From: Octopus sinensis
Lineage: Eukaryota
Direction of reading: 5' to 3'
DNA length: 64,000 nt
NCBI RefSeq assembly: GCF_006345805.1
Contig: NC_043014.1
Coordinates: 39,308,001-39,372,000 of the forward strand
The notes below the pieces were generated by a model, which was given only the letters and a program-made list of their open reading frames with translations, did no database searches and was not told the DNA's origin. Shown one piece after another: positions 3,174 through 50,556 of this stretch (positions are counted from its first letter, which is position 1; each line of letters starts with the position of its first letter). Both the position numbers and the translations under genes were made by a program.

Positions 3174-6100
3174 GTACGTCTTGTTCCACGTCTTTCATCT
3201 TTACTGAAAATATGTATCTAAATCAAATTTTTAAAATAACCTTAACACACCAATTTACTGATTATGTGCCCACCGAAGTTGTTTATAAATTTAGAGACAT
3301 AATATCGTCTTGCTGCTTTATATTTTTGGGTTTATTTTACGTCACGTTGTCCACTTCATCCACATTGACGAAATGGCTTTTCTTAATTGAAGTATAATCT
3401 CTTGTAGTTATTTGCTTAGTCAATCTTGCGTTATGTCTCTGTTTATATAAATCATTTGTGTGTGTAAATGTACATTTTAAACGGGTTTTATATATTATCC
3501 GTTTGAATGATATCAGAAATGTCCCGATCTTTTATCTAAAATAGCGAATCTCGAAATTACTGCAAGCAGTTCAAATATGTCGAACTTGGAAGTCTTCGTA
3601 TTTTATTTAATTAAAGCTTAAAATTTTTCTTTTTACTGATCATCGACTATTTCTAGAGTGAGTGTATTATTGTGTTTAACTATAAAGGCACATGTCTGCA
3701 CAGATTTGAATGTTTTCTAAAGTTCATGTATATTTAATTATTTTACTGATTAAGAATATAATCTTGGCATTTTTTAGTCAATTTTTTTCTTATAAGAAAC
3801 ATCTGAAAACTTCGATTATATTATTTAATCGGCGATCTTTAATCCTTTAAGGAATTTTAATTTTATTTTTACCCAAAAGTAGTTTGAGAAAACGGCCAAG
3901 AAACAAACATGTGACCGGTTTTTAATTTCATAATCCGAAATAATACCCGTTAAAAAGGCATTGCATGCTTTTTAGCGGGAAGGTGTAAATTAAACTTTTC
4001 TAAAATCTAAGTAATTGCTTTCCCACCATTTCTTTTTTGTTTTTAAACTCCCCTAATTTATGTGTCTTCAAAATGAACTATTTCATGGTATAGTTTTTGA
4101 CACAGGAAATTTTTACTCTTACACCGTCTCACTGGACGGGTGTAACCGCTGAAATGCTATCTTACTGACTAGCCTTACCTCATGGAGAAGGTAAATTATA
4201 AGAAATGGATGATTGTTTCCACCTATGGCATTACTCATAATTTTTTTGTCCCCGTAAATTTGATTTTGGTTTTTACGTTTTAAATTCCGTTCCTTTTCCC
4301 AGTAAATTTTTGCTATGACGTCCCTCTCACAAAATGTGTATACACAAGCACCTGTAGGTAATTTAGAAACAAATTTTTCTAAAAAATCCTGTTACGTATT
4401 AACCGACACCGCTACGGAAAATGGGATTTTTTTCTAGCGCTGTCAAATGAAAATGTCACCCATAATTATAACCCTAGTATCAATCTATTGCATTTCAATC
4501 TATTTTAGGGTTAGGGGTGGGGGACGGGTATCTTTTTTTCTTCGCAAATGTAAATAAACCCAATCTGTTTCTTAAACGACTGACATATTCATACAGCACG
4601 AACTGTTTTCACCCCAATAGACGGTCAGCGATTGGTTAAAATTGCCGAAATGTTCGAAATTTTAGACGAAATATCTTACATACTATAGAATTTTCTCAAT
4701 AAAGCCAAGAAAAAATGATGTTTTATAAACACATTCTACCAGTATACGAAGTTTAAAAATGTTTAGTTAACTAGAAATTGTGTTGACATGTGCCGTTCAA
4801 AAGGAAAAGATCCTTTTAGAAATAAGTGTACGATTTATATTTGCTCCTTAACTCCCTAGTTGCCAGGTCTCAAAGAGATTGTGTTAGGTCGCAGTTCAGT
4901 CTGAGTACAAAATTAGGAAATAGTTGAAAGCAAGTAAAATGTTAAAGACTAGTAACTAATATTGAGAATTTTATTTTATAGACTGGCGTTAGTGTCAAAG
5001 ATGTTGACCAACATGAATTCACAAAAGCATTGGGTGCTTTTCTTAAAAGGTTTGTATACTTTTTCTATTTTGCCAGGATAACTTGCTATATTTATATTTG
5101 TGAATACAAAGTTGAATTTAAAACTTTTCATATTATGGGTCATATAACAAGAAAAGAATTGCCTGATTGTTCTTATTTGACGCAGCTAGGCAGCTTAACG
5201 AATCAATTCTAATGCGAACTTGGAATGAAAGGGACTGCAATTCCCACTTGGGCGATCTTGGAGTTTCACTTCCTCTTCTGTCAATCTGTGGCCAGTGAAG
5301 GAATTTTATGTTCCAGTTCTGTGATTTGGGTTTGTTGTAAGACTGTTGAATATTAGGCAAAAACGTCCATCATTTATTTAAAGTTATTATCCTAATAATA
5401 TGCATTGTTACAGAAATAATTTTAATCAGATGGAAACATTTTAAGCCATTGCCTGATCTACAGAAATATCCAAGTTGTTACATTATGAAACATGGATTAC
5501 TTCTTACTCGTCCCAAAGCCCAATGTTGAAATGTGCAATGGTCAAATGTTTCTGCATCCCATTCTACTTGTATATGAGTAAATTTTTTCGGAGTTTCTTA
5601 GTAACCCAACCTGTCAAATAGAGGCTATGCCTTTTCATCATTTGGCCAGTTTAAGTACAGTATTTTTTTTTTTTTTTTTTTTTTTTTTTGCAATTGGAAT
5701 ACATTAAAAATTGGTTTCTGTATAGTCAGTATTGAGTGATTTGTATTTTTGTTTCCCTTTTCTCCAATGACTTGTAGATTGTGAATTTAAAAGTTAGAAT
5801 TTTCATGACAGATTGATGTAAAGATGACTTTTAATAACTGGTTAGTGCCTGTTAATTTGGTTTGCAGTTCTTGCAATGTAGAAGAGACTTTAAAATTAAG
5901 ACTTGTAGCTGTAAATGATCTACATTACGGGGTTTACAAAATGAAAATACTTTATAAATTTAATATCTGGAGAACTATTTACAAAAATCTTTTCATAATT
6001 TTGCTTGATTAACAAGTTATTAAATTTTGTCTGATATTGTTTATCTTTATTCTTTTATAATTCATCTTATTTTGTTTATTTATTATTCACCTTATTTTGT

Positions 6101-9100
6101 TTATTTAAACAGTAAGGAATGTGAGTTCTATGATGATCTTTTGTTATCCCTGTCTGACATTGTTGAGGACATGTCTGTCTGAGATCTCACTTTGTATTTA
6201 TGCAAAACTGGGAAATGTATTTGATTGTGATGCATCATTTTTCTTTACAGGTCTGGTAAAATGAAAATTCCAGAATGGGTTGATATTGTAAAATTAGGAA
6301 GATTCAATGAATTAGCTCCTTACAGTCAAGACTGGTTTTATACACGGGCTGGTAAATATATGTGTATATATAGTATTTTAGATATTTTGGATAACCTTTA
6401 GTATTCAAACAAGCCATATCAGGCCTAAATATTCTTTCTGATGTTCAAACTGGCCATATCTGGCCTCTCACACCTACCCTACATTATACATTCACATCAT
6501 CAAAATCTCAAAGGCATGCTTAAATGGAAAACTGAATAAATAAGCATTACATTTGACAGAATAATTTGAATACTAAAGGGTTAAATATGATATTTAATCT
6601 TTTCTCTGTTAATGATGAATTATTGGTCATGCTAATACTGAAGGATATTGGAACTAGATGTGCTAGTTTTGATGCCTTATGAGTTCAAATGACTTCTGAA
6701 ACATGGATTTCACGATTAAATTCTGCATTTTATTTTAATACAATTATAACATTATTTTGAGGTTTCTTTTTTCTTTCTCTTCCAGCTTCGGTTTGCAGGC
6801 ATTTATATATTAAATCTCCTGTTGGTGTTGGGGCATTCACAAAAATATATGGAGGTGAGTAAATACATATACATAGGCTTTGATATTGGCTCCACTGGTG
6901 AATGTTATTTTGAGTTACTCATGTACTGAGTGTATTTAGTTTTGGTTTCTTTTTAATATAAAAAATATAATTTTCTATACATAATAAATGACAGTTTTTC
7001 TATTTCCTGAAATTTGGGTTAATTGGTTAAAAGCAAGTTATGTAAATGCCAGACAACTGGTTGCTTAAAGTGAAATAAACATCGGAGATGCTTGGCTCCA
7101 TGCAGAAACTGCAGCAGCTACTTAAGGCTTTCCTCTTGGTGGTGATTGAAGCCATTGCAACATTGGAAACTCTTCTGTATCATCATCAGGTATCTTGGTT
7201 ACAACCATTTCACTCTTTAGCCTATACAGTTTGAGTGAAGTGGTGGAAACTGAATTAACCTTCACCTGCTGAAGGATCTCATCTGCAGTCTAACACAACC
7301 TTCTTGAATTGGTTCCAGTTGTTGTGAGTACCTCCTTGATGGCTTTAGTTGTTTGAATTCCAAACCAATCTTCTGCAGGAAATGGGGATCTTTTCGGTTT
7401 GACCGGCAGTTTTTAACATAATTTGTAGGTAACTAAAAAATTTTAAACTTCTCATACTGGTAGAATGTGTTTATAAAACATCTTTTTCTCTTGGCTTTGA
7501 GAAAATTCTATAGTTTGTGAGATATTTGTTGTTTTTCTTCAATGTCGTCTATTGAGGTAAAAAACATTCTGTGCCGTATGAATATGTCCCTCGTTTAAGA
7601 AACAGATTAGGTTTGTTTACATATGAGAAGAAAAAAAAGATACCCTTCACCCCACCCCTAACCCTAATCCTAAAACAGATTGAAATGCAATAGATCGATA
7701 CTAGGGTCATAACTATGGGTGACAATTTCATATGACATCGCAAAGATCTGGAAATGGTGCACTGGTTTTGCTGAAAGATAACAGGGTGACTTCAGTAGTG
7801 AATAAGGTTGCTAGTATCCTTTGACAGGGCTCATGAACCAAGTCATGATTTGTGGCTTTCTTCAGCTGGTGGGAAATGTCAAGCTTGTCTTTCTAACTCA
7901 ATAGTAGAATGTAGTTTCAGGAAGATTTTGGATGCTGTAGTGTAAGAGAAGTTGACAGTTCTTATTTGAAAAGTGGGTTTCTGTGATGATTTTTTGTTAT
8001 CCCTGTCTGAAAAAGAAATTGAGGAAGTATATATCTGAGATCTCACTTAGGAACTGTGTTAGTTTTAGATGAAGTTATGGATGGTGTTCACCTCACATGG
8101 GGGAAAATTTAAACTCATGAACTGATTACAGATGTAAGATGCTAACAGATCTTGAAAATAACAAGATATGGTCAGTTTGAATAAGATATAATTTAACTGA
8201 TATGTAACTGGAAATCACAGGTGTTCCATTTCTAGTGAGATATCCTCATTGTTTAACATTACCTTCCATGCTGGCACAGGTTGGACGGTTGGACAGGAGT
8301 TGACCAGGCTACTGTGTCTGTTTTAGCATGGTTTTTATGATTGGATGCCTTTCATAACACCAGCCACCCTGCATAGTGAACTGAAATGCATATAAGAAGT
8401 GCAGTGCCTTCTCTATTTTGCAGACTTACTCTACAAGATAGAGTTGGTTATAAACTTGATGAAAATGTGATGGGGTGCCAGGGAAGAATGATGAGTGCAC
8501 AAAATATGCAGTTAACTAGTCATTAGTAGTTAGTTAATTTTTGGCTCAAAAGCAAATAGCAAGGCCATGTAGGGGGACATGGAGTTAAGTACAGGGTGGT
8601 GTTCATGTAAAGAGTTCAGGCCACTTGAGGTCAAGGGAGACTTTGAACAAAGCGGTCGTTGGCATCTTCACCATCTCGTCTGGCAGCTTGTTCCACGGAT
8701 CCGCAACCCGGACGGAGAAAGCTCCTCTCCTTCGATTGAGATGAAATCGTCGCAGGTAGAACTTTTTGGAATGACCCCGTAGCCGACGCTCTGGAGCAGG
8801 AGTGAAGAACAGCTCTTTCGAGAGATTACACTTTCCGCTTATGATGTTGTGAGCGAGAATGAGATCACCACGGCGGCGGCGTTTTTCTAGAGAATAAAGG
8901 TCGAGCGTCCTCAGCCTTTCTTCATAAGACAAATTTTTGAGACCAAGAACCATGTGGGTAGCCAGCTTCTGGACTCTTTCGAGATGCTGTATGTCTTTGA
9001 GGAGATAAGGAGAAGAGGCTTGAATCCCGTACTCCAATATGGGTCTCACCAGTGTGACATAGAGTGGTAGGAATATGGCTGCTGTGAGCATTCCGAATGA

Positions 9101-12100
9101 CCGTCGAATCAAGAACAGAATTCCGCGTGCTTTGTTGGCAGCATGGATGCACTGGGCCGAAGGCAAAAAGGAGGAATCCACCAAGATACCCAGGTCTTTT
9201 ACCTGATCAGTCCTCTCCAGCAGCAGACGACCCGGCTCGAAATCAAGTTGGGTTGCAGGAGGAGAGCCAACAGGCAGATGACAGCACTTTGACACATTCA
9301 GACACAGGTCCCATTCGTTAGACCACCTCCAAATTTGGTGGAGGCATCGACGAAGATCCTCTATATCACCGCGAGGAGCGACCAGTTTGACATTGTCGGC
9401 AAATAGAAGGGTGTGTTGTGTGAGGTCGTCGGGTAAGTCATTTATGAAGACCTAGAACAATAAGGGCCCAAGCACTGAACCTTAGTAGTTGATGCCTTTC
9501 TAATAGTGGGTTTCTGTGATGATTTTTTGTTATCCCTGTCTGAAAAAGAAATTGAGGAAGTATATATCTGAGATCTCACTTTGGAACTGTTTTAGTCTTA
9601 GATGAAGTTATGGCTGGTGTTCACATCACATGGGGGAAAATTTTAACTCATGAAGTGATTACAGATCTTGAAAATAACAAGATATGGTCAGTTTGAATAA
9701 GATATAATTTAACTGATATTAGTAGTTGATGCCTTTCTGGTAAAAGGAAACCTTTTCAGGAAACTGGTTTCTTTCTCAGTTGGTTGAATAGTTTTTTTTT
9801 GGATTTGATCTATTGTAATAGTGTGACTAACAATAGTACTATGCTATAGATGTGAAGTATTTCAGTATTAATCTATAGTGGTTTACAACAGCAAACATCC
9901 TTATAGCAAATCAATCTAAAAGCATAGATTATTTTTGTTTTGTAAAAGTATCAAATTTCTGTGCATGTTTAATTTTTAATGACAACATTAAGAAGCTTCT
10001 GTAGTATAGGAGTGACTTTGTAAGGTTAACTACAAAACATCATGATTTGCTTTCCCTTGCAATACTGAGTGAGAGAATAAGCTATCACTTTGCACCTTAA
10101 GATTTTGTTAAGACATTACCTCTTGTGGATAATTTCCTATGCTTAGATTGTATCAATTTTTACACAATTCCCATATGGAATGAATGCTGCAGAAAATAAT
10201 TCTGCTTGCTCCAGAATAATATAGACTGAAAATTATAGTAAATAATTCAAAATTGTAAAATTTACTTGCTATATAATAAATTGTACTTAGGTTAAAAGCA
10301 ATCTATGCACAAGTTTATCTGGCAAGTACTACTACCTTAATGCCTTATGTTACTTGGTCTTGTGACCAATCTTTATGGGGGCTTTCTCCATACTACTGGT
10401 TTTTACTACTGGGAATGCTAATTTCAGTAGGTTCTGAAAATTTATCAAATTTCTTCTAGCAACAACTGAAATTTGTGTGTTTCTGAGAACTTTTGATCTG
10501 TTTTCATTGTAGAATCTCAGTAAGTAGGAATATACTCCAAGCCTTGAATGGTTCATAGGCTTTAAGAATCAAGTCATCATTGCCCTTGTATAATTTGATA
10601 AACAATGCTATTACTCAGAATAGCTACATCTACAAGTTATTTCTGTTTCCATCATTGCTTACCTGCTAAACTGCTGAAGATAATATAAAGTCTGGATTTA
10701 GTTCAAGAGGATGAGCTCTAAATGTAATTTATAGTAGGCACTTAGTGAATTCATAGAGTAAAGAATATTCACAAAATTGTAACAGAACAAGATACAAATC
10801 CCATTTGCTGATAGTCTGCCAAAAAAAAAAAAACATACACGGGAAAGGAAAAAGTCTGTATGAATATTTTAATCCAGTGTTATTGCAATTTACTCAGTAT
10901 TACTACAGTCTGATAAAACATCAAGAGAGGTGTCTATATTTTTAGAGGTACTTATACAAGTTAAATATTTATATTGATCTTTCCTTTCCCGAAGTGTGTA
11001 CACTTTTTTTTTTGGCAGACACTATTTTGTTTATTTAAATAGTAAGGAATGTGAGTTCTATGATGATCTTTTGTTATCCCTGTCTGACATTGTTGAGGAC
11101 ATGCCTGTCTGAGATCTCACTGTGTATTTATGCAAAACTGGGAAATTTGGGTGTTTGTAAATTTTCCCTTTAAATTCTCTGAAAAATATTTACAATATAT
11201 CTTCTAAAGTTTGCTCTGGATTTGTATTTAAAATGTCAATGGCAAGAAGGTTACCTACTTATAAAATTTACGTTTCCTTTTTGTAGGACGCAAACGAAAT
11301 GGTACTGTTCCCAGTCATTTTTGCCCTGCCTCAGCTTCCATTGCCCGACGTGTTTTACAGGCTCTGGAAAACCTCAAACTTGTTGAGAAAGACCCCAATG
11401 GGTATGTATTAAAAATCTTTGGAATTTTTTCTTTTTTTTCTCTGTAAAGTAGTTCATTTGCTATTTGCTTAGTCTTTTTATTTTTACTTTTAAAAATGTT
11501 TTTCAGTTAAATTGGAAAAAAATAAGTCCAGGGTCTTTGCCAGCTTTATACTTACATGAACTCTAACTTGGTATTAACTTCAGTGTTGGTGATTAAATCT
11601 GTGTCTGTGTGTATATTTATATTATATTGATGACATTCAAACACGAAAAATGTTAGTCCCTGTTGTATTGCATCATTAGAGGGGCAATTTCTTTCATAAT
11701 ACTCAATTCATGAGTGAAAGGATTTCGGGACACCTCAACCAAAAGCTACCTTGGGATAATGAGTCTAACAAGAGTTTGTGGCTCTTATTTATAAATTCAG
11801 CAAACAATCTGCTGTTGCATGCTGATATCTGCTAACCCAGCAAGAATCAGAACAATGACAAACATTCTTATCCCTTTAGCATTAAATGTAATGCTTATTT
11901 ATTCACATTGTTTTGAATTATGCATTGTCCTGTAGCTTTGAGATTTCAATGTTTTTTTTTGTTGGTTATTTTTTTTTACAATTCATGGGAGGTGAGGGAG
12001 ATCAGGTGCTTCACTTGAAGGAATTTCCCTTGGTATTTGAAAAAGATATTTTTCCAGTTTGTTTTTTGCATTCTCCCATAATTTGCATTTAAAAAAAATT

Positions 12101-12229
12101 TCACCTTTCTTCATGTTTGTTTTCAGTGGTCGCCGTTTAACCTCTCAGGGTCGTCGGGATTTGGACCGAATTGCTTCCCAGATAAAATACAACCACCTTA
12201 CCACTGGTAATGCTGCTCATACGAAATAG
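3156..12229 (+). CDS. RPS19: 40S ribosomal protein S19 (eS19), 6 coding exons, 157 aa
   Basis: join(3156-3173,4982-5049,6251-6351,6786-6854,11287-11401,12127-12229) = 474 nt, all GT-AG. Translation [157 protein letters not shown] is unmistakably eS19. Confidence 0.97.
4400..4813. mobile_element. Merlin-like MITE, left end truncated (RPS19 intron 1)
   Basis: Family body and right TIR GAAAAGATCC. Confidence 0.65.
4982..5049 (+). CDS. RPS19: RPS19 coding exon 2
   Basis: ttttatag acceptor, [22 protein letters not shown], donor AG|GTTTGT. Confidence 0.95.
6121..6190 (+). ncRNA. box C/D snoRNA, snR38/SNORD1-type (subtype A), RPS19 intron 2
   Basis: Box C ATGATGA 6130-6136, guide GTTATCCCTGT + D' CTGA 6154-6157, C' TGAGGA, D CTGA 6179-6182, terminal stem GTGAG.TCT/AGA.CTCAC; D box 68 nt from the 3' splice site. 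Guide is complementary to the conserved LSU rRNA ACAGGGAUAAC. Confidence 0.9.
6251..6351 (+). CDS. RPS19: RPS19 coding exon 3
   Basis: [33 protein letters not shown], canonical splice sites. Confidence 0.97.
6395..6580. mobile_element. piggyBac-like MITE in RPS19 intron 3
   Basis: CC(C)TTTAG...CTAAAGGG|TTAA ends; partial copies near 17880, 22600 and 30415. Confidence 0.6.
6607..6703 (+). ncRNA. box C/D snoRNA, U6 snRNA Am53 guide (mgU6-53/SNORD8-9 type), RPS19 intron 3
   Basis: Box C ATGATGA 6612-6618, D' CTGA 6638-6641 preceded by GGTCATGCTAATA (12 bp, one G-U, to U6 AUUAGCAUGGCC; +5 rule gives A53), D CTGA 6696-6699, stem TGTT/AACA, 86 nt from the 3' splice site. Confidence 0.85.
6786..6854 (+). 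CDS. RPS19: RPS19 coding exon 4
   Basis: [22 protein letters not shown], donor G|GTGAGT. Confidence 0.97.
7386..7749. mobile_element. Merlin-like MITE
   Basis: Perfect 8 bp TSD GGAAATGG (7378-7385 and 7750-7757). Confidence 0.75.
7972..8047 (+). ncRNA. box C/D snoRNA, snR38/SNORD1-type (subtype B), RPS19 intron 4
   Basis: C GTGATGA 7983-7989, guide GTTATCCCTGT, D' 8007-8010, C' TGAGGA, D 8035-8038, terminal stem AGTGGG.TTC/GA.ATCTCACT. Confidence 0.85.
8532..9481 (-). mobile_element. 5'-truncated CR1/L2-type LINE in RPS19 intron 4
   Basis: [16 protein letters not shown]...FADNVK (RT domain, stop and D>N), ORF 8603-9295 ending [10 protein letters not shown]...WPELFT; candidate 9 bp TSD TTAGTAGTT at 8523-8531 and 9482-9490. 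Confidence 0.9.
9505..9580 (+). ncRNA. box C/D snoRNA, snR38/SNORD1-type (subtype B duplicate), RPS19 intron 4
   Basis: Matches 7972-8047; C 9516-9522, D' 9540-9543, D 9568-9571. Confidence 0.8.
11051..11120 (+). ncRNA. box C/D snoRNA, snR38/SNORD1-type (subtype A), RPS19 intron 4
   Basis: One substitution from 6121-6190; C 11060-11066, D' 11084-11087, D 11109-11112. Confidence 0.88.
11287..11401 (+). CDS. RPS19: RPS19 coding exon 5
   Basis: [37 protein letters not shown], donor GG|GTATGT. Confidence 0.97.
12127..12229 (+). CDS. RPS19: RPS19 coding exon 6 with stop
   Basis: [18 protein letters not shown]...TK*; ATTAAA at 12253-12258 is a candidate polyA signal. Confidence 0.95.
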
Positions 12230-12607
12230 AGAGTATAAATGTGAAAAAAATTATTAAAAAACAATTGAATTTATCATTCGTCTTATTGTTATTCTTGCAT
12301 GTTTAGCACAAAATATGAAGAAAAAGGTTAGATTGCAGGGGGAATGTATTTTTCATTTTCTTTAGGTTTTAGTTATAGGTCAAACTACAGAGCAACATAG
12401 TAAATTATATGTAAACCAACGTCTGCATCACTACCAATACCATAGAAACTAATGGCCAGTTTATATGCTCACCAAATTGGTATTGCAGAAACAAATTCTT
12501 GGCCACTATCTAGTCAATGTTTTAAATGACAAGTTGTTTTGCAGTTTTGGGCAGTAACTAGTTAACCGTAGGGTATAGTAGATGCTAAAGTTACTGTAGT
12601 AACTTTA

Positions 12608-12958
12608 GGCGCAGGAGTGGCTGTGTGGTAAGTAGCTTGCTTATGAACCATATAGTTCCGGGTTCAGTCCCACTGTGTGGCACCTTGGGCAAGTGTCTTC
12701 TATAGCCTTGGGCTGACCAAAAGCCTTGTGAGTGGATTTGGTAGATGGAAACTGAAACAAGCTCGTGTCCCCCCAACATTGCTTGACAACCAATGCTGGT
12801 GGGTTTACATCCCCATAACTTAGTGATTCGGCAAAAAGAGACCGATAGAATAAGTACTAGGCTTACAAAGAATAAGTCCTGGGGTCAATTTGCTTGACTA
12901 AAGGCAGTGCTCAAGCATGGCCGCAGCCAAATGACCGAGGCAAGTAAACGGGTAAAGG
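12608..12958 (+). mobile_element. SINE family A
   Basis: Family consensus match. Confidence 0.85.
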
Positions 12959-13682
12959 GTAGTGTTCCAAACCTGAAACCAGTCATATTTGCATCAGGAC
13001 TTGGAAATGATGGGGGCCAAAATGGCTGAAGATCTTAGTTAGGTGTGCATATATTTAAAATATGTACAAATGTGTCCACTATGAATTTTTTCCTTGCACT
13101 ATCTACGGAATTGTTGGGACACCTTCAAAATGAATAAATGAAAATATGCTGGTATAACATTTTTCAACAACAGTTCTGGGTTCAAACCCATTTGTGACAC
13201 CTTACCTCAGTGTCTTCTGCAGTCTTTGTTATTGGAATGGTGCAAAGGCTTTCCATGTTTAAGTGCTCATGTTTATTTTTGTGTCTTGTAACTAAGTGGT
13301 TTAATAGAAATAACGCCAAGGCAAAAATAAGTACTGCATCAGGTGATGTGATTTATCTCCCTTGCATTTGTGAATCTACGTATTGCTATGTGGAAGTTCA
13401 GTGTCATTTCTTTCCAATCTTCCACGCAAACATCCAGCCATGTTTGGAAATGGGCAAGAGTTGGCAATGAGAAAATTTGCTGGAGCACCATCTGAAAGGG
13501 TTTTTAGTCAAAGAAATTGATCCTGGGACTTATTCTTTGTAAGCCTAGTACTTATTCTATCAGTTGCTTTTGCGGAACTGCTAAATTACAGGGATGTAAA
13601 CACACCAACATCAGTTGTCAAGCAATGGTGGGGAGCAAACACAAGACATAAATATATACATATGAGAAGTTTGTCAATTGCA

Positions 13683-16012
13683 AGACAGATAACCTTGATA
13701 TCAAAGGAGAGAAATGTGTCCGCGTGAATGATGGTGCCCTTGTGTTTAATGATTCTGCAAAGAAAGAAGCTTGGAGATGCCATTATGAAAGACTGCTGAA
13801 TGTGGAGAATGAATAGCAGGAGGAGAATCTACCAAAGGTCAACCCAATTGAGGGACCAGCTATGTGAATCAACAGTACTTTGGTAGAGTAAGCAATTAAG
13901 GATATGAAGACATGGAAAGCACCTGGCCCATCAGGAATCACTGCTGAGATACTTGTCACCTGCATTGTAAATCGGATACTTCATGAGTCATACCCAATGA
14001 CTGGTATAGCAGCACCATAATCAACTGCTACAAGGGTAAAGGTGATGCTTTAGATCAAAATAACTACAGGGATATCAAATTATTGGATCAGGTGATGAAA
14101 GTTACAGAGAGTCATAGCCCAACTAATCAGGGAGAGAGTTAGCCTAGATGAGATGCAGTTTGGGTTTGTGCCAGGCAGAAGCACCACTGATGCTATATTT
14201 CTAGTAAGGCAACTGCAGGAGAAATATCTAGGAAAAGATAAACCTCTACTTGGCTTTTGTTGACTTGGATCCTCTGATCCCGTCTTTGGAATAGATGAGT
14301 GGTTGGTTAGAGCTGTACAAGCCCTGTGTGGAGATGCTGTCAGTAAGGTGAAGGTTGGCAACGAGTATAGTGAAGAATTCCAGGTAGAGGTGGGGGGGGG
14401 GGGTCACCGAAGATCAGTCCTCAGCCCCTCTTATTCATTATAGTCCTCCAGCAATAAGTGAGGAATTCTAGACTGGGTGCTCCTCTATGCTGATGACCTT
14501 GTTCTAATAGCCGAGTTTCTGCCAGAACTAGATATGAAGTTTAGAACATCGAAGCAAAGTCTAGAATCGAAGGGCCTTGGGGTTAATCCAGCAAAAACCA
14601 AAGTCTTAGTAAGTAGGAAGGCTGTCAAATCACAATCCCCTTCAGGTAGATAGCCCTGTTTGATCTATAGAAAAGGTGTGGGTAGAAACTCCATATGATA
14701 TACCTGGTGTAATGGACACATAAAAGGTGCAGCAATATTAAAGGAAGGTTAACTGAGAAGGTAGTTTTGGTGTGGCAGATGCACAGGGGCAATAGATGCA
14801 CAGAAAACAGATTCCATCACATACCTTCTGCTACCTAGGTGACCAAGTCTGTAATAAGGGTGGTTGCTATGAGAGTGTTGTGGCTAGAATAAGAATAGCC
14901 TGGGCAAAGTTCAGGGAGCTCCCATCTCTGCAAGCAACTAAGGGCCTCTCGCTCAGGATGGGAGGTAGACTGTATGATGCATATGTATGAACTGTCATAC
15001 TACATGACAGTGAAACATGAGCCACGATTGCTGGGGACATGCATAAGCTTGAAAGACATGAAGTTAGTATGATCCACTGGATGTGTAATGTCAGTGTGCA
15101 TATATGACAGAGTGTAAGCACCTTGAGAGAAAAGTTGGGCATAAGAAGCATCAAATGTGGTGTGCAAGAGAGACAACTGCACTGGTATGGCCATGTGTTA
15201 CATATGGATGAGGACAAGTGTGTGAGAAAGTACCACCCCTTACTGTGGAAAAGGTAGACCCAGGAAGACATGGGATGAGGTGGTGAAGCATGACCTTCAA
15301 ACATTGGGCCTCACAGAAGCAATGACAGGAGACCAAGACCTTTGGAGATATGCTGTGATTGAGAAGACCTGGCAACTAAAGTCAGATTGCAGCCATGACC
15401 GATGCCAGTGTTGCATGTAATCCTGAGGCATCGGGCGATATGATATGCTTGAGAAGACCTGTTGAGTCAAGTAAAGCCAAAATTGTAGCTATGGCCAGTG
15501 CCCTCTGACTGGCTCCTGGTCTCGTGGTATGTAAAAAGCACCATCCAGACGTGGCCAATGCCAGTATCTTCTGACTGGCTCCTGCACTATCTGAATGTGA
15601 TCGATGCCAGGACCGCCTGACTGGCCCCAGTGCCAGTGGAATGTAAAAAGAACCATCAAATGTGGCTGATGCCAGTACCCCCTGACTGGCTCCCATACCA
15701 CTGGCACATAAAATGTACCATCCAAAGGTGGCTCATACCAATACCTCCTGACTGGCTCCCATGCTGATGGCATTTAAAAAGCACTATCTGAACGTGATCA
15801 ATGCCAGGACCGCCTGGCTGGCTCCTGTGCCAGTGGAACGTAAAAAGCACTCACTACACTCTCAGAGTGGTTGGCATTAGGAAAGGCATCCAGCTGTAGA
15901 AACATTGCCAGACCAGACTGGAGCCTGGTGCAGCTGCTGGCTGTCCAGACCTCAGTCAAACTGTCCAACCTATGCCAGCATGGAAAATGGACATTAAACA
16001 ATGATGATGATG
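13683..16012 (+). mobile_element. decayed RTE-clade LINE (RT region, 3' UTR tandem repeats, (GAT)n tail)
   Basis: FGFVPGRSTTDAIF, LYADDL and WYGHVLHMDED motifs across many stops and frameshifts. Confidence 0.85.
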
Positions 16013-16510
16013 AAAGGAAAAAAAATGTATACTGAATGTAAAAGCGAATGGGAGACAAACACTAGGTCCGTAATTCTTCATCAGTTATTGGCCAATAGGT
16101 AATATTCAGTAAATGCACCTTTAATGAGTTATATGAAAGCCATAGATGAAGGTAGAGAGAGAAGGAGAAGTCAATGAGAAGTGGTGTCAGTGGTATTGAA
16201 TATGTACGATGAGGTGGAGGAGAAAGCAAAGAGCAAAGAAGTAATAGTCTGTAACATAGATCCATGGCAGTTTAAGCAGAATGTTGGTAGAGAGGACCAG
16301 GTCTAGAGAGGTTGGAGATAAATAAAACTGCAATGCATTGGCAAGATGTGGACGAAAGGTCATATATAAAATAGCACAGAGGTACCTGAAAGCTAGGTAG
16401 GGGGGAGGGACGTGAAGAAAGAGGAGAGGGTGTTTAGGTTCATAAAAGTGGGTTGCTTGGCAATGTAAAGAATTAAGAGGTATGCAACTGGTCAGAATTA
16501 TGGACAGAGA

Positions 16511-17640
16511 TATGAGGTAGTATCAAAAAGTTTCCAGACTAGTTATTTATATATATAAAGTTGAAGTTGTCAGTGTGTAGCAGGTTTAGTAGCCTTCAAC
16601 TAATACTCTCTCCTCTGAGACCCTGCAGTGCAAGTTGACCAAAATTGAGAGTATGTTAAGACCAAAAATTATTTACATCAAAAAGGTGCTTTTTTCTATG
16701 AAAATCCCTATTTTTTGACTGCTTTTCGGTGTATTTCAACCAGAAAAATGTTCACTTAAAGAGAATAACAAGCTACATAATGCAAAACCTTTTAACTCTC
16801 GCTTTTTAAAAATTCCAATTCTAAAGGGTCAAAACAAACCCGAGCAACGCTGGGCGATACTGCTTATATTTAATAAGAAACAACTTATTTACCTAAGTTT
16901 TAATATCATCTTGTGCAACAATACATTGACCTCAGCATTCCTGCTACTTTTGGAATCCAGTCTGGAAGTTGTTTTCCATAAATGAATCAAGTATCTTCTG
17001 TGATACAATCTGGATCTGGACAACAGTGTGAAAACGGGACCTTTGAGCTGCATTTTCATCTTGGAGAATGGATGGAAGTCTGCAGGTGCTAAATCTAGCA
17101 AATAGGGTTGGTGTAGAAGAGATACCATGTAGTGTTTGGTAAAAAACTCATGAGAACTTAGTGATGGGTGTATTGTCTTCATGAAGAATCCAATTCTTTG
17201 TGCTTCACAGTTCTGGTTGCTTTTGCCAGATGCCCTCCTGCAAATACTTAAAAAAATCGCAGTACAACTCTCAATTGACAGTCTGGCCACAGGGAACGAA
17301 TTCTTGATGCACAATACCATATTTCCGGGGGTGATACTCATGGCAGGCCTTCCAGATCACTCATCATCTTCCAGGGATGTTTTTCCACTTTTCAAGCGGC
17401 TGTGCCACTCAAAACACTGTGTACGACCCATTGCCCCATTGCCATAAGCTTGCCAAGGCATGCTCAATGTCTCTGTGACAGATTTCCCAAGTTTAATGCA
17501 AAATTTCTCATTGGCTCTTTGTTCCAACTTCCTATCCATGACAAAATCACAGACTACAGCATACAGAGGATCACAAAACCACAAATTTCACAACTTGCAA
17601 GGTAAACACAGCGAAATTTCACCATGAGGAGAGTCTACTG
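16511..17640 (-). mobile_element. decayed mariner transposon
   Basis: MDRKLEQRANEKFCIKLGKS N-terminus and HQPYLLDLAPADFH (YSPDLAP-like) motif; TIR-like end at 16511. Confidence 0.8.
16545..16866 (+). mobile_element. non-autonomous Helitron nested in mariner
   Basis: TATATATAAAGTTGAAGTTGT 5' end; CCCGAGCAACGCTGGGCGATACTGCT 3' hairpin as in 31445-31841. Confidence 0.6.
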
Positions 17641-28829: not shown

Positions 28830-31800
28830 TATATATATATAATATATATATATTATTATATATATATATATATGCACACAACAGGCTTCTTTCTGTTTCC
28901 ATCTACCCATCCACTCTCAAGGTTATTGTCAGCTTGAGGATACAGTAGATGTTAGGAAGATGATTTAGTCAAGTGATTTAAGTCAAGATGGAAAAGAATG
29001 GCACAACCAAGACAGAATTGGAAGTGCATTGTGACCAGTGGTGTATAAGAGCATCTGATGGTCTGGTCCATACTGGGATACTGTGATTTATTTATTTATT
29101 TATTTATTAGAGGAGTCAGTCTTAGACCTACCTGGCAATTTCAAGCTTGACCAAACCATGTTGTTTTACTGTGTTTTGTTAAAAACCACAACTTCAATTA
29201 AATCTATCCAGAGTTGCTTTGCTTCAATATTTCCCATTGATAATGGCTAAGAGCTAGTAACACATCTGTGAAGCTGAACACATGTGTTTCTTATACCTTT
29301 TTACTATAAAAGAGAGAATTTTTTTCTTCATAGTAACTGCATTGAGTTTGCCTTTAGAAGTTGAAGTGTGTGGTGAACATATTTTACTTAACCTAAAGTT
29401 CGTTTATGTGTGTGTGTGTGTGTGATGATTTTAAACCCCACCTCTATAACAGATATGATAGTAAAATGAAAAATAATTAAACTATAAGGTTGTCCCAAAA
29501 GTTCGTAGAAAGTCTTGGAAAATAATGGTCTTTATTTTGAGGAATAATTTTTGTTGTTTTTGTTAGTACTTGGCAAGTAAAAATTCAATTTTCGCAAGTG
29601 CTTACAAACTTTTGGGACAACCTAATACTTACCATCATCTTATCAACCGATTACTTTTTAATTTTTTAGCCAAGTAGTTAAGGTTTGGAGTATGAATGAA
29701 GGAATTTTTCTAAAGTTCCCTCCTTCAATAAGAATGTTATTACGTAGGAATTATATTTTATTTAGTTATACTTCAATAACAGAAAGAAAATAAATAAATG
29801 AATAAATAAATTACTTACCAATACATATGCCATAGACAACACAATATGAAACTAGAAGAGGATAATTGGTAAATATAGGTACAAATGCTGTTGCAATGCC
29901 AGAAACTAGCAAAGACATGTAGTTAATGATGAAACAGTTTGACCATTTCTGATCGCTAACCCATCCAATGATAATGCGAAAAATTGTGTTTGATATTCCA
30001 ATGATGGATAAGAGTAATGCGGACTCACTTCTGGAAAAATTCAACCTTAGTCCCACAGATGGTAAGTATGTGTAAGGAATAAAGAAACCTGGAATGAAGA
30101 AACAAAAAGAAAAATGAAATTGCTGTCATCAATAAATTTTATGTTATGAGTATCAGGGAAAACATTGATAACACAAACAGAATTTTTAATCTTTGTTATA
30201 TCAATTTTTATCTAAACATTATAATATCTCTTTTACTCTTTTACGTGTTTCAGTCATTTGACTGCGGTCATGCTGGAGCACCGCCTTTAATCGAGCAACT
30301 CGAACCCGGGACTTATTCTTTGTAAGCCCAGTACTTATTCTATCGGTTTCTTTTGCCGAACCGCTAATATGAATAAATAAGCATCGCATTTGACAGAATA
30401 ATCTGAGTACTAAAGGGTTATGTTTTACTCTCTCTTTTACTTGTTTCAGTCATTTGACTGTGGTCATGCTGGAGCACCGCCTTTAATCGAGCAACTCGAC
30501 CCCGGGACTTATTCTTTGTAAGCCCAGTACTTATTCTATCGGTCTCTTTTGCCGAACCGCTAAGTGACGGGGACGTAAACACACCAGCATTGGTTGTCAA
30601 GCAATGCTAGGGGGACAAATACAGACACACAAACATACACACACACATATATATATACATATATACGACGGGCTTCTTTCAGTTTTCGTCTACCAAATCC
30701 ACTCACAAGGCTTTGGTCGGCCTGAGGCTATAGTAGAAGACACTTGCCCAAGGTTGCGCGCAGTGGGACTGAACCCGGAACCATGTGGTTGGTAAGCAAG
30801 CTACTTACCACACAGCCACTCCTGCGCCTATATATATATTATAATGTTTGTTTTTATGTTCAGTTATAATAGAAACAATATTAAGTTAATCTGATAGGTT
30901 ACTCTATACTTTTGTAGAGTAAAAAATTTATTATTCTTAAACAAGAATATTATTATTGACAGAAATTCAAAATTTTCACCAGCAGTGTGTGTGTGTATGT
31001 CTGTGTGTGTGTGCGTGTGTGTGTATGTGTTTGTGTGTATGCATGCACGCATGTAAGTAGGAATACAGCTGCCTTAACCCTTTTGTTACCATATTTCTGT
31101 TGAGATGCTCTGTGTTTCTTTCAATTAATTTTAAATATAACAAAGAATTTAGTAAAATAACTTAGTTATCATTAAGCTAGTGTTAGGAACATTAATTGTG
31201 ATGAAGGTTTGGTAGAAGATTTTAATTCAGAACTTATGAAAACAAGACTTCTGTACTACAGAGGCAGGGCCGGTTTTGGCCGGGTTGGTAACGAAAGGGT
31301 TAAAGACAGTGATCAACGAAGGCCCTGACTTTAGTTAGGAAATTAATTGGGTTTTATATGTCTGCAGATAGCTGATGAGATCGGTTCTAGCATGGAAGTA
31401 ATGACCATGTTTAGAGTACATTTTGTCTGTAGCTTTATTTGAGACTAGCAGTATCGCCCGGCGTTGCTCGGGTTTGTAAGGGAAATAACTATATAAGCAT
31501 TTTTAGAGAGTTATAGCCAAAAAATAGCAAAAAAATGCATTAAAAATAGAAAAAAAATGATGGTAAATTTTTTTAAAATCGTTGACTCATCGTAGACATT
31601 TTTAGAGAGTTATTTCCCTTATATAATAGCGAAAAAATGCATTAAAATGGAAAAAAATGATGGCAAATTTTTTTTTAAATCGTAGACTCATCGTAGACAC
31701 ACACTAATACCCAGAAGGGCTCGATATGAATCACGACTATAAAATACCCGGTTTTGGTTAAACTGCACCGCAAAATGTGGGAGTAGTTAGGAATCTAAAT

Positions 31801-34626: not shown

Positions 34627-37600
34627 TTATTATTATTCAGGTCACTTTAATTATTTTAACTTTTTCCCTTTTATCTTGTTTCAATCCAGTTCAGCTAAGC
34701 TTGAGCACTGCCTTGATGTGGTTTAGTCAAACAAATCAACCCCAGGACTTATGTTTTTTTAAAGCCTAGTACTTATTCTATTGGTTTCTTTTGCTGAACT
34801 GCTAAGTTACAGGGACAGAATCATGCCAAGACAGGTTGTCAAGAAATGATAGGTGGACATACATACATACTATATATATATATATCTTTCAATATATATA
34901 TATATATATATATTTTTCAAATCCACTCATAAGGCTTTAGTCAGCCTGAGGTTATAGTAGAAGATGTTTGCCCAAGGTGCCACACAGTGGAGCTGAACCT
35001 GGAATCATGTGGTTGGGAAGAAACCTTCTTACCACACAGCCACACCTGCACCTAATTTAAGTAAATTTAAAATTTGTTTAATTTAGAGTTTGTTGCTCAA
35101 GGTGACCATCACTGGTTCAGAAAAATCAGTAATCTAGAAGGGTTTCGGAACCAAAGGTCCTAGAAATTTGATATAGTACTTATACTGGTGCTTTTTATGC
35201 TATTTGTACAAGAGACAAAAATAGCAAAGTCAACACTGATAAGATTTGAGGTAGGATTTCCTTACTCTTATTGATTAATTTAAGATAAAGTATTGGTGAT
35301 TTTTGCATTGCTAATACATTTTTCTTTCTCGTGTGTTCTTCCTGGGTCAAATATATTTAAAGTAAAATTTGTCTTTTGACTTGATACATAGCTAGTACAG
35401 CCCAGCTGTTTAGCATTGAGATGTCACACACAAAATTCTGAAATAAATTCATTTACTCTCTAGCACAGTGGTTTTCAACCAGGGTTCCGTGGAACCTTAT
35501 GGTTCCGCCAGTACAGTCCAGGGGTTCCGCAAGAAGTTACAAAACTGCTAAAATCGGCAGTAATTTTAAATTTTCCTGTGCAGATATGTGTGCATAAGAC
35601 TATTAAATTATTGCACAGGGGTTCCCCGAGCCAGTGGAATGTTTCCTTGGGGTTCCGCTCCAGCAAAAAGTTTGAAAAGCACTGCTCTAGCATATTGCAT
35701 TTTCTCTAGAATCTTTTCCCCTGCCACTGCCCTGTAACTATAGGGGAGAAAACTCATATGGTGACATGATGCACCTACAGTGTGCTAAAGATTACTAAGA
35801 TATATTTGCAAAATTTATTTGAGTTTAAGTTACACAATTTTATCATGATTTTAACATGATTTTAACTGAAAAGCTGGAGTGAAATTTGTACAGGGGGCAA
35901 AGCTGAAAACTATAAAGGAGAAAACTTTTGTATCAAAATTTAACACTAAATAAGGGGTGCAACTTATACATGAATAGATATGGTAATTGTTTGTAATTTT
36001 ATGCTAATTGTAGCAAAGTTCACAGCAAATCCTGCTTGCTATATATTGTTTATATTACTCTTTTGCTTGTTTCAGTCATTTGACTGTGGCCATGCTGGAG
36101 CACCACCTTTAGTCGAGCAAATCGACCCCAGGACTTATTCTTTGTAAGCCTAGTACTTATTCTATCAGTCTCTTTTGCCAAACTGCTAAGTTACGGGGAT
36201 GTAAACACACCAGCATCGGTTGTCAAGCGATGTTGGGGGGACAAAAACACACACACACACACACATACATTCATATATATGACGGGCTTCTTTTCAGTTT
36301 CCGTCTACCAAATCCACTCACAAGGCTTTGGTCAGCCTAAGGCTATAGTAGAAGACACTTGCCCAAGGTGCCACGCAGTGAGACTGAACCCAGAACCATG
36401 TGGTTGGTAAGCAAGCTACTTACCACACAGCCACTCCTGCATTTATACTGTTAAGAAATATAATTATTTCTGTCCATCTTTTATACAATTCTAAACGTTC
36501 CTGAGTAAAACAAAACATTATCTTAATTAAAGAAAAATCACTTGAAGCACTTACCTAGCATAAGAAGAAAACACGCAAAACTATACAGAAAAAAAGTTGG
36601 TTTCAACTCCTTGTATTTCTTAAAAGCTTTTCCAATCTTTTCCATCCAACTTTTTTTATTACCATCTTCATTTGAAGGAATCACAACCATGCTTGATATG
36701 AATTCATCCATATTTGCTGATTCCATCTTTTCAGAGAGACGTAAAAGACTGCCACTGTAGAGGACATCTTTACGGTAAAATGGCGACACTGTAGGTCTTA
36801 CTGGAGTTTTTGAAGTTAAATGTGTTGGCAAGATATCATGGCTAGCAGCCATTCGGGCAATCTTAGATTGTTCTTGGTTGTTACTTACATTAGGAACACC
36901 AGGAAGAAAAGTTCTTCCAGTACCAGTAATATCTAGTGATCTATGTCTTCTCGAAATTGCATGGTAATTTTCTTGTTCTATGTCATGTATCCTTTTAAAT
37001 TTCATTCGAAGGTTCGACTGTTTGTGTTTATCATCTTGTCTTATAATAGGATCTTTAATTTCATTGTCAGTAGCTTGGCAAGGTATTGAAGGGAGATCTT
37101 TGTCTTTAGGAGGTTTTAATGGACGGTAGAAGCTTCCGAATATTATTCCGTTTAACATGAGAGCTGATGTGATCATCATTGAACCTCGCCAGCCATATTC
37201 CTTCAACAAGAGCTCAGCAATGGGAGCAAATACAAAGTTACCAATTCCAGATCCGCAGACTGCAATACCTGTTGCTAATGCTCTTCTCTTATCAAAATAG
37301 TAACCAACCATGACAATTGCAGGCAAGTACATGAATCCAAGACCAATTCCTGAAATGAATCAGAATAATTTTATATCAACAACTGCTATGAAATTGTAGG
37401 AAGACATAACATTTACTCCTTTCAACAAAGTCTGGGTTTGGGACCCCCTTCAGTCACGGCACTGACCATGGGATTGCACCTAGAAAGTTACCCTCCTAGT
37501 CACAAGTCTGGGCATGGTGGTTTTATGGAAGACCAGCAGTCGCCCATGCATACCGGCCTCCCCTCTCCATGCCACCAGTGTTATCCAAGGGAAAGGCAAA

Positions 37601-49264: not shown

Positions 49265-49295
<31 letters not shown>

Positions 49296-49636
49296 TGTAT
49301 GTATGTATGTATTGTATGTATGTATGTATGTATGTATATATGTATGTATGTATGCATGCATGTATGTATGTATGTATGTACGTATGTATGTGTGTGTATG
49401 TATGTATGTATGTATGAATGTATGTATGTATGCATGCATGCGTGTATGTTTGTATGTATGTATGTATGTGTGTATGTATGCATGTATGTGTGTGTATGTA
49501 TGTATGTATGTATGTATGTATGTATGTATGTATGTATGTGTGTGTGTATGTGTGTATGTATGTATGTTTGTATGTATGTATGTATGCATGCATGTTTGTA
49601 TGTATGTATGTATGTATGTATGTATGTATGTATGCA
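49262..49636 (+). repeat. (TATG)n array, inverse orientation to the 5 kb array
   Basis: Direct reading. Confidence 0.95.
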
Positions 49637-49849
49637 TATCATTATTCATTTTTATTTCAAGATTTCTTGCCAATAGAGAAAGAGCCAGCTTCTAATGTAG
49701 AATTTACTGTCTCCAAGTAAATTAATATGTCTCCACGGCCAGACATACTTTCACGGAATATTGGAAATAAATGACATTGCTTCCAATAACAGTGGCTCTC
49801 GATTACAACTATCAGGCAATGTCAAGACAAGGAGATACAAACATATATG

Positions 49850-50524
49850 CATACATGCTTGCGTGCCTATATACATACTTACGTACGTACGTACGCACAT
49901 ACATACGTACACACATACATACATATATGCATGTATGCATGCATACATACATACTTACATGGCATACATACATAGCATACACACATGCATACATACATAG
50001 CATGCATACATACATACACACATACATACATGCATACATACATACATACATACATACATACATACATGCATACATACATACATACATACATACATGCATA
50101 CATGCATACATGCATGCATACATACATACATACATACATACATACATGCATACATACATACATACATGCATACATGCATGCATACATACATACATACATA
50201 CATACATACATACATACATGCATACATGCATGCATACATACATACATACATACATACATACATACATACATGCATACATACATACATACATACATACATA
50301 CATACATGCATGCATACATACATACATACATGCATACATGCATACATGCATGCATACATACATACATACATACATACATACATGCATACATACATACATA
50401 CATGCATACATGCATGCATACATACATACATACATACATACATACATACATACATGCATACATGCATGCATACATACATACATACATACATACATACATA
50501 CATACATACATGCATACATGCATG

Positions 50525-50556
<32 letters not shown>

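Follow-up and report, generated by a model that had tools for sequence, protein, structure and literature searches.

The window analysed here is a 64-kb stretch of Octopus sinensis DNA carrying the ribosomal protein S19 gene, RPS19, in intron 4 of which a small nucleolar RNA (snoRNA) has been duplicated beside a 5'-truncated CR1-like long interspersed nuclear element (LINE). A snoRNA-bearing segment, B1, has been copied into a second position, B2, between two exact 20-bp repeats (the 20-mers R1 and R2), and the 20-mer begins at the same base as the 9-bp target-site duplication of the LINE. The result is a second intact predicted snoRNA copy in the same intron. Judging from the layout at this one locus, we put the chances at about even that one break gave both inserts. 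The features concerned are the following.

6786-6856, plus strand: RPS19 exon 4, upstream edge of the host intron 4
7969-8203, plus strand: source segment B1, a C/D snoRNA (7974-8045) with ~158 nt of downstream intron
8523-8531, plus strand: left 9-mer TTAGTAGTT, the LINE target-site duplication, abutting the LINE 3' tail
8532-9481, minus strand: LINE, CR1-like, 5'-truncated, 950 bp (from open reading frame, translation and Pfam RVT_1)
9482-9501, plus strand: R1, internal 20-mer TTAGTAGTTGATGCCTTTCT, between the LINE 5' end and B2
9502-9719, plus strand: new copy B2, with its snoRNA (9507-9578) identical to that of B1
9719-9738, plus strand: R2, right 20-mer TTAGTAGTTGATGCCTTTCT, overlapping the end of B2 by 1 nt
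11287-11402, plus strand: RPS19 exon 5, downstream edge of the host intron 4

Host gene and species compared

A tblastn search with RPS19 and a reading of the splice sites place the region inside the plus-strand RPS19 gene, and on splicing the exons encode a protein with 100% identity to Octopus RPS19. The host intron 4 spans 6857-11286 (4.4 kb). The first-pass annotation had put the site in intron 4, and the exons at ~6786-6856 and 11287-11402 do bracket the insert. Bases 1-14 kb of the window are 100% identical to O. sinensis chromosome CM016876.1 (locus L002), from which window positions are obtained by subtracting 6845. Four species were compared at the RPS19 locus: O. sinensis (assembly GCA_006345805.1), O. 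vulgaris (L001; the independent assembly GCA_951406725.2), O. bimaculoides (L003) and Argonauta hians (L004).

The copy B2 and the 20-mer repeats

B2 and B1 align in blocks of 165 nt at 95% and 64 nt at 97% identity. BLAST gives 89.8% over 235 columns when a gap of 17 nt is counted; outside the gap there are 8 mismatches in 218 nt, and the reported duplication of ~7969-8203 at 9502-9719 is thereby upheld. The gap follows position 9660 of the O. sinensis copy and lies between ACAGAT repeats. It had been described as a microhomology deletion in the duplicate. B2 of O. vulgaris has the full 235 nt, so by this comparison the 17 nt were lost later, specifically in O. sinensis, and outside the copying event. 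The downstream intron inside the copy accordingly amounts to ~158 nt in the ancestral B2 and to 141 nt in O. sinensis. At the other end, B2 starts 2 nt 5' of the predicted terminal stem of the snoRNA and 5 nt 5' of the start of the Rfam match described below.

The sequence TTAGTAGTTGATGCCTTTCT occurs exactly twice in the 64 kb of the window, at 9482 and 9719, where 0.01 occurrences with up to three mismatches would be expected by chance; the exact 20-bp repeat flanking the copy is therefore as first described. Base 9719 (T) is common to the end of B2 and the start of R2. No A-rich tail is present on B2, the end of which reads ...AATTTAACTGATAT|TAGTAG, with the terminal sequence ...TTTAACTGATAT directly abutting the repeat, and the earlier statement that the copy lacks poly(A) agrees with this 3' end. 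The R1/B2 junction (TTTCT|AATAG, versus TTTGA|AAAAG at the source) shows no clear microhomology, and the B2/R2 junction shows 1-2 nt. B1 lies in cis, 1.3 kb upstream of B2 and in the same orientation, and occupies the span from 320 to 554 nt left of the break.

Two candidates for a source or guide of the copying were rejected. The copy in intron 5 of O. bimaculoides, B3, does not qualify as the source of B2, the 3' flank of which matches B1 past the point where B3 diverges. A 75% match to the 20-mer at 8335-8354 does not qualify as a guide for a template switch, as extension from there would not yield B2; it lies in a dispersed repeat (8242-8383) and has only a 10-mer in common with the 20-mer, which is at chance level. 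In the register compatible with the junction, the downstream flank of the source and the 20-mer agree at no more than 5/12 positions, too few to be meaningful as microhomology.

The snoRNA family

Four copies of one C/D snoRNA with the common guide GUUAUCCCUGUCUGA are found in the window.

A1, near 6130: A-type copy, RPS19 intron 2
A2, near 11060: A-type copy, RPS19 intron 4
B1, near 7983: B-type copy, RPS19 intron 4
B2, near 9516: B-type copy, RPS19 intron 4

A1 and A2 are 97.6% alike across 124 nt. A scan of the whole window against Rfam at gathering thresholds gave no match, and a permissive scan returned snoR38 (RF00213; E = 1.5e-4), which scored 41 bits where the gathering threshold is 45. 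This match spans the full model, with the guide aligned to the consensus, and the snoRNA is likely a diverged member of snoR38, a family that corresponds to yeast snR38 and human SNORD1 and whose guide presumably pairs with ACAGGGAUAAC of the large-subunit ribosomal RNA. Boxes C, D', C' and D read UGAUGA, CUGA, UGAGGA and CUGA, and the predicted terminal stem is AAGUGGG/CUCACUU; boxes and stem are kept in the four window copies and in O. vulgaris, O. bimaculoides and Argonauta. Orthologues of B1 are located at L003 13592-13830 in O. bimaculoides and, by position, near L004 12611 in Argonauta, and by this distribution B1 is the ancestral copy.

The LINE and its target-site duplication

The LINE fragment reads in a single frame, with one internal stop, from the ...GSVLGPLLF motif of the reverse transcriptase, inside which it is truncated, to its natural stop, followed by a 3' untranslated region (UTR) and a tail. 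What is left of the element is thus the C-terminal portion of its reverse transcriptase and the 3' UTR, with a tail of the (AACT)n/(TTAAC)n type and no poly(A). Among named proteins, those closest to it are reverse transcriptases of birds and turtles (38-44% identity, full length); the protein database gave no close LINE match from raw octopus sequencing runs. These relatives and the type of tail point to the CR1 group, and the stretch ...SYEERL..L.L.SLE.RR.RGDLI resembles chicken CR1. Three other copies of the family were located.

163-463 of the window: LINE family copy, ~88-90% identity
41093-41451 of the window: LINE family copy, ~88-90% identity
L005 5925-6558: young LINE family copy in O. 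vulgaris, 96.9% identity

All four copies of the family are 5'-truncated and carry microsatellite tails (TTAACTTAACTTAAC, TTAATTTAACTTAAG, TTAACTAACTAACTAAC, TTAACTAACTACTAA), the three others ending in TTAACTTAACTTAAC, TTAATTTAACTTAAG and TTAACTAACTAACTAAC; a microsatellite-type tail in place of poly(A) and frequent 5' truncation are traits of CR1-clade LINEs. The LINE in RPS19 ends in TTAACT followed by AACTACTAA in O. sinensis, and O. vulgaris has one extra AACT unit. No target duplication is recognisable on the three other copies.

Positions 8523-8531 read TTAGTAGTT, the same as the first 9 nt of the 20-mer. A 9/9 match has a chance of ~7e-6 per register, or ~8e-4 when 11 x 11 registers are allowed, and on these figures we retain the earlier proposal that the beginning of the repeat is also the target-site duplication of the LINE. 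The left 9-mer directly follows the microsatellite tail and is similar to it, so that up to 4 nt of it could be microhomology between tail and target. In LINE sense the 9-mer (AACTACTAA) equals the tail repeat AACTAACTAA minus one base; in other words, TTAGTAGTT is the complement of the (AACT)n tail, one base short. A plus-strand 3' end ...TAGTT could pair with AACU units of the LINE RNA tail, and such pairing would explain why the LINE landed at this site.

Comparison between species

O. vulgaris has the same layout (9-mer at L001 15381, LINE at 15394-16345, R1 at 16346, B2 at 16366-16600 and R2 at 16600), with a LINE orthologue that is 96.3% identical and one mismatch in R1. The B2 copies of the two species are 99.1% identical and have two derived bases in common (AAAAG to AATAG, and CACCTCAC to CACATCAC). 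Both also retain ancestral states that each B1 has since lost. The common derived bases and the retained ancestral states point to one ancestral copying from B1. Since the O. vulgaris assembly is independent, the agreement excludes a misassembly, on which the earlier annotation had asked for a check, and by the same comparison the LINE-repeat-B2 structure is older than the split between O. sinensis and O. vulgaris. As a separate observation on small numbers, B2 is better conserved between the two species than its parent, with 2 differences in 218 nt against 10 in 233 for B1 (window 9502-9719 and 7969-8203 versus L001 16366-16600 and 14837-15071).

O. bimaculoides does not have this structure.

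8424-9940, strand not applicable: block of ~1.5 kb missing in O. bimaculoides, with TTTTG at both edges in O. sinensis

Besides the LINE, the repeats and B2, the block includes unique flanking sequence, ~99 nt on the left and ~200 nt on the right. Its junction in O. bimaculoides reads ...CTCTATTTTG|TAAAAGAATC (L003 14040-14052), which joins window position 8423 to ~9941 without a run of N. Either O. bimaculoides has lost the block by deletion, or the other lineage received it in an earlier insertion. When the flanks 8424-8522 and 9739-9940 were aligned to introns 4 and 5 of O. bimaculoides, scores were no better than those of shuffled sequence. A larger duplication, in which the flanks would match sequence following B1, was rejected on scores no better than shuffled sequence as well, and a long collinear alignment from permissive BLAST was an artefact of the scoring scheme. 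Argonauta can be aligned at the exons and snoRNAs only and is too diverged at the insert site. A clean empty site was thus found neither in O. bimaculoides, which lacks the whole block, nor in Argonauta, which is unalignable there. The annotation had predicted a related genome with a single copy of the target and neither insert; no such site was found, O. bimaculoides missing more than the LINE and the copy. An intermediate state, with one insert alone, occurs in none of the four species.

A single break as the proposed origin of both inserts

From left to right, the locus consists of the 9-mer, the LINE (minus strand, tail to the left), a 20-mer, B2 (plus strand, 3' end to the right) and the second 20-mer. 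The LINE and B2 are therefore head to head, with their 5' ends facing each other and their 3' ends pointing outward (8532 on the left, 9719 on the right). The boundaries read A|TTAGTAGTT at 8523, C|TTAGTAGTT at 9482 and (A)T|TAGTAGTT at 9719. The annotation had proposed that the integration of the LINE was coupled to the copying of the snoRNA; the interlocked arrangement with its common left boundary stands and makes coupling the most economical reading, while the coupling itself is read from the layout.

In the sequence of steps that we propose, a plus-strand nick 3' of TTAGTAGTT would be made in RPS19 intron 4 by the CR1-like LINE, the tail of which would pair with the nicked 3' end, and target-primed reverse transcription would yield a 950-nt complementary DNA (cDNA). 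A second-strand nick, in the minus strand and 9 nt to the left of the first, would leave a right-hand DNA end with its minus strand terminating at the complement of the first T of TTAGTAGTT. The growing plus strand would join this terminus, copy 20 nt to form R1 and detach; it would then copy the 235-nt snoRNA-bearing segment 320-554 nt left of the break, rejoin the same terminus and copy through it to form R2. Under this coupled reading the site before insertion would have been a single ...AGTCA TTAGTAGTTGATGCCTTTCT GGTAAAAGG....

The three boundaries would coincide because one minus-strand end was joined twice, and the 9-bp duplication would place the minus-strand nick immediately left of the 9-mer. 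The 1-nt overlap at 9719 and the junction overlaps of at most 1-2 nt fit what is expected for end joining, and the head-to-head layout is the one seen where extension has proceeded from the two ends of a LINE-made break (PMC11702581; PMC13174262). The minus-strand nick site, ...CTACTAA^TGAC, is unlike the tail-complementary first-strand site of the LINE family, which makes a second-strand nick more likely here than an independent first hit.

Several points weigh against a single break. No species or haplotype shows an empty or intermediate state, O. bimaculoides being without the whole block, and the proposed steps are drawn from a single locus. The R1/B2 junction is without clear microhomology, which is awkward for a template switch by a host polymerase. 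CR1-type LINEs probably require a template that carries their own 3' end, and the use of a foreign RNA would not be easy for them. The three other copies of the LINE family have no recognisable target duplication. Analogous triplications in mammals were read as two consecutive insertions (Weber 2006, PMC1687206).

Two insertions at one hot spot as a possible alternative

Consecutive insertions are also the alternative that survives best at this locus, and we regard it as possible although on the improbable side. Two separate insertions would have occurred at one hot spot, in either order: the snoRNA segment with its 20-bp duplication, through LINE machinery acting on intron RNA or through repair of a staggered break, and the LINE into or beside the left copy with its 9-bp duplication, the site being used again as TTAGTAGTT attracts the LINE family. 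The 9-mer complements the (AACT)n tail apart from one missing base and would thus be a preferred target, and the motif would be present twice once the first event was done. In mammals, a snoRNA retrocopy and a short interspersed nuclear element (SINE) have been found at identical sites with a target triplication, for which consecutive events were favoured (Weber 2006, PMC1687206). Against this, the minus-strand nick would have had to hit the same base, or to fall within 1 nt of it, in both events, at a place that is not tail-complementary; with insertion points uniform along the 4.4-kb intron, the chance of this is ~1e-3. Nor is an intermediate state seen among the four species.

RNA or DNA as the template

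If one break did give both inserts, the 235 nt could have been templated either by the genomic minus strand of B1 or by cDNA made from intron RNA. In the RNA version, the cDNA would run off the 5' end of an intron RNA that was trimmed at its 5' end and extended at its 3' end. The position of B2, which starts 2 nt before the terminal stem and extends into the downstream intron, speaks for this version: a start at the snoRNA 5' end is the hallmark of RNA-derived snoRNA copies of the Type-2 form (Weber 2006, PMC1687206). With a DNA template, and given that a segment containing the snoRNA was copied, such a start would have an estimated chance of ~4%. Template jumping needs no homology, which fits the R1/B2 junction. 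For DNA speak the nearness of a source that lies in cis and is oriented alike (320-554 nt from the break), the absence of a tail, and the LINE-free copying seen at the RPS19 locus in A1, to which we return below. The probable need of CR1-type elements for their own 3' end likewise argues for DNA.

A related explanation, which concerns the nature of the template and overlaps with that of a single break, is that B2 is a Type-2-like snoRNA retrocopy made from RNA by the LINE reverse transcriptase. The template would be a 5'-trimmed intron RNA with ~158 nt of 3' flank, primed by the minus-strand 3'-OH of the second-strand nick, which amounts to twin priming on a second RNA. RPS19 is highly transcribed, so intron RNA would be abundant at the break. 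The start of B2 2 nt before the stem with downstream intron attached, as in Type-2 retrocopies, the 20-bp target duplication and the orientation of B2 opposite to the LINE all agree with such an origin. We nevertheless hold it to be rather unlikely: B2 carries neither an A-rich tail nor one like that of the LINE, a free RNA would not be expected to land as close as 1.3 kb to its parent, and A1, which starts ~37 nt upstream of box C, is not defined by an RNA end. Moreover, plain twin priming predicts a single bracketing duplication without an internal third copy. As the whole explanation of the locus, plain twin priming was rejected, as it yields no internal 20-mer.

Coincidence and assembly artefact as improbable readings

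We consider it very improbable that the LINE and the duplicate are unrelated, the left 9-mer being a variant of the LINE tail, B2 a product of ordinary DNA-level repair or slippage, and the shared 9-mer a coincidence. The left 9-mer (AACTACTAA) can indeed be read as the tail units AACT-ACT-AA, O. vulgaris differs by one AACT unit here, and LINE-free copying in the same gene is seen in A1. A tail variant, however, should not turn up again where the LINE has its 5' end. The sequences at the LINE 5' junction and at R2 both repeat the irregular 9-mer exactly (~7e-6 per register, ~8e-4 with slack). An assembly artefact, such as a collapsed or chimeric join, has a negligible probability, as the same layout with species-level differences is present in GCA_006345805.1 and GCA_951406725.2, without runs of N, and nothing was found to speak for such an artefact.

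Turnover of snoRNA copies at RPS19

In both Argonauta and O. bimaculoides, intron 4 contains two snoRNA copies and intron 5 a single one (B1, A2 and B3 in O. bimaculoides). Because these two arrangements are the same, three changes can be assigned to the O. sinensis/O. vulgaris lineage by comparison of the sequences, namely the gains of A1 and B2 and the probable loss of B3.

The gain of A1 in intron 2 (~6070-6217) is apparent from the empty position in O. bimaculoides (L003 12235-12320) and from Argonauta, which has no snoRNA in intron 2. A1 is a copy of A2 (window 11023-11146) and starts ~37 nt upstream of box C, without a LINE alongside and without a bracket resembling the 20-mer. Instead, there is a tandem doubling (6054-6107, 93% match) of a 25-nt unit that runs from the left flank 17 nt into the insert, and CTTATTTTGTTTATTTA occurs in this doubling at 6066 and 6091. 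Repeated attempts at copying leave a stutter of this kind. As A1 has this stutter and no LINE, snoRNA segments in RPS19 have also been copied in a LINE-free manner, and the earlier description of the LINE-associated locus as a picture of how intronic snoRNAs multiply is too broad.

In O. bimaculoides, B3 comprises ~205 nt of intron 5 (L003 15622-15835) and is 96.6% identical to the B1 of that species. In O. sinensis and O. vulgaris its place is taken by 21 nt (TATACTTACATGAACTCTAAC; window 11547-11567), and the intron-5 copy was probably lost in their lineage.

A further difference concerns A2, which in O. sinensis and O. vulgaris has 13 extra nt (TATTTTGTTTATT) 5' of the snoRNA (11023-11035). 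These are missing from A2 of O. bimaculoides (L003 ~15090-15100) and are also present at the A1 junction, a pattern that suggests either that A1 and A2 underwent gene conversion or that O. bimaculoides deleted the 13 nt.

Relation to known systems

Mammalian snoRNA retroposons (snoRTs), including those of Type 2, and target-site triplication with a neighbouring retroelement were described by Weber 2006 (PLoS Genet; PMC1687206), who also raised the possibility of a machinery that stays in place and takes a second RNA. Like Type 2 snoRTs, the octopus copy starts at or near a snoRNA 5' end, here a predicted one, includes parental downstream intron, is bracketed by a target duplication and lies in sense orientation in an intron; like the mammalian triplications, it has a second retroelement at the same site and the target present three times. 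The duplication in Type 2 snoRTs measures ~9-16 bp, and the 20 bp found here are consistent with that type, although longer than the mammalian peak. Unlike Type 2 snoRTs, B2 has no A-rich tail. In place of an L1-driven SINE, its neighbour is a CR1-like LINE that has a microsatellite tail and is oppositely oriented to B2, and the target is partly triplicated (9, 20 and 20 nt). The parent of the copy, moreover, is 1.3 kb away in the same intron, which makes this a cis duplication and not the colonisation of a new host gene, and the snoRNA is of the C/D type, whereas many of the examples quoted from Weber 2006 are H/ACA.

A second group of comparable cases consists of twin priming, two-template LINE-1 (L1) insertions, and templated insertions or small duplications at L1 sites (PMC11702581; PMC13174262). 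As in twin-primed and two-template L1 insertions, the octopus segments are head to head with their 3' ends outward, the reverse transcription of B2 being putative. A duplication from staggered nicks (12-20 bp) is likewise preserved, and the reciprocal break end would here, too, serve as primer or joining partner. In the L1 cases, which come from human L1 in cell models or from primate genomes, one duplication brackets the insert. The octopus locus differs from twin priming in having an internal third copy, R1, and a left copy of 9 nt instead of a single duplication, and from the L1 cases in its non-L1 element and in a second segment that consists of local intron with a snoRNA gene.

Cis-duplication, or intragenic duplication, of intronic snoRNAs has been reviewed by Shao et al. 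2009 (PMC2653536). The octopus case conforms to it in that a new paralogue with intact boxes and guide arose in the same host gene, where copies are gained and lost among the introns of RPS19. Cis-duplication is usually described as tandem, with no mechanism given, whereas the octopus copy is a 235-nt insertion with a 20-bp duplication beside a LINE. The nearby template in cis is a likeness to microhomology-mediated templated insertion, as in polymerase theta end joining or break-induced replication. Such repair would be expected to leave at least 2 nt of microhomology where templates are switched, against the 1-2 nt seen at B2/R2 and none that is clear at R1/B2. Since B2 has no A-rich tail and the target duplication is not single, we place the octopus case neither among snoRNA retrocopies nor under twin priming; it works like a blend of both.

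Other features of the window

The remaining RPS19 exons and the repeats of the window are summarised here.

~3156, plus strand: short first exon of RPS19
~4982-5051, 6252-6351, 6786-6856, 11287-11402 and 12128-12230, plus strand: coding exons of RPS19 (tblastn and splice sites)

A short, dispersed SINE-like repeat is very abundant, its copies being ~85-90% identical to one another. It is present at 12600-12960 and 13503-13660 and in more than ten other places, for example 535-937, 2075-2387, 30232-30830 and 36055-36440, and sits in RPS19 intron 5 as well as 3' of the gene. A second repeat family has copies at 4427-4813, 7386-7741, 2461-2831 and 44069-44459. Its copy in intron 4 (7386-7741) has no counterpart in O. 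bimaculoides and was, by this comparison, inserted in the O. sinensis lineage. Just 3' of RPS19, open reading frames with reverse-transcriptase-like motifs (e.g. ...LLYADDLVLIAE...) at 14300-15000 indicate another, unrelated retroelement. An (ATAC)n simple repeat of ~5 kb (49835-54815; ~1256 units, 87% match) is preceded by (TATG)n at 49266-49634, and these repeats (49266-54815) account for the extreme strand skew of the composition profile.

Significance for snoRNA evolution

Paralogous snoRNAs within one host gene are common, and their origin is rarely visible; the embedding of snoRNA sequences in host introns has been called 'still enigmatic' (Shao et al. 2009, PMC2653536). The RPS19 locus preserves the junctions of a young event at base resolution. 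As a single case without an empty-site control, and with a similar layout known in mammals, its value lies in illustration and in the hypotheses that it offers. With two gains (A1 and B2) and one probable loss (B3) in one lineage, RPS19 is also a compact system for the study of snoRNA turnover. Our results suggest that LINE-made breaks can seed cis-duplications, here in a mollusc and with a non-L1 element. It is a speculative and rather remote extension that breaks made by poly(A)-less CR1-like LINEs are a regular source of intronic snoRNA cis-duplication in cephalopods and perhaps in other invertebrates. If this were true, reverse transcriptase would jump between a broken DNA end and a partly processed local snoRNA precursor, and host genes would acquire new working snoRNA copies without the A-tail signature, which standard retrocopy screens would miss.

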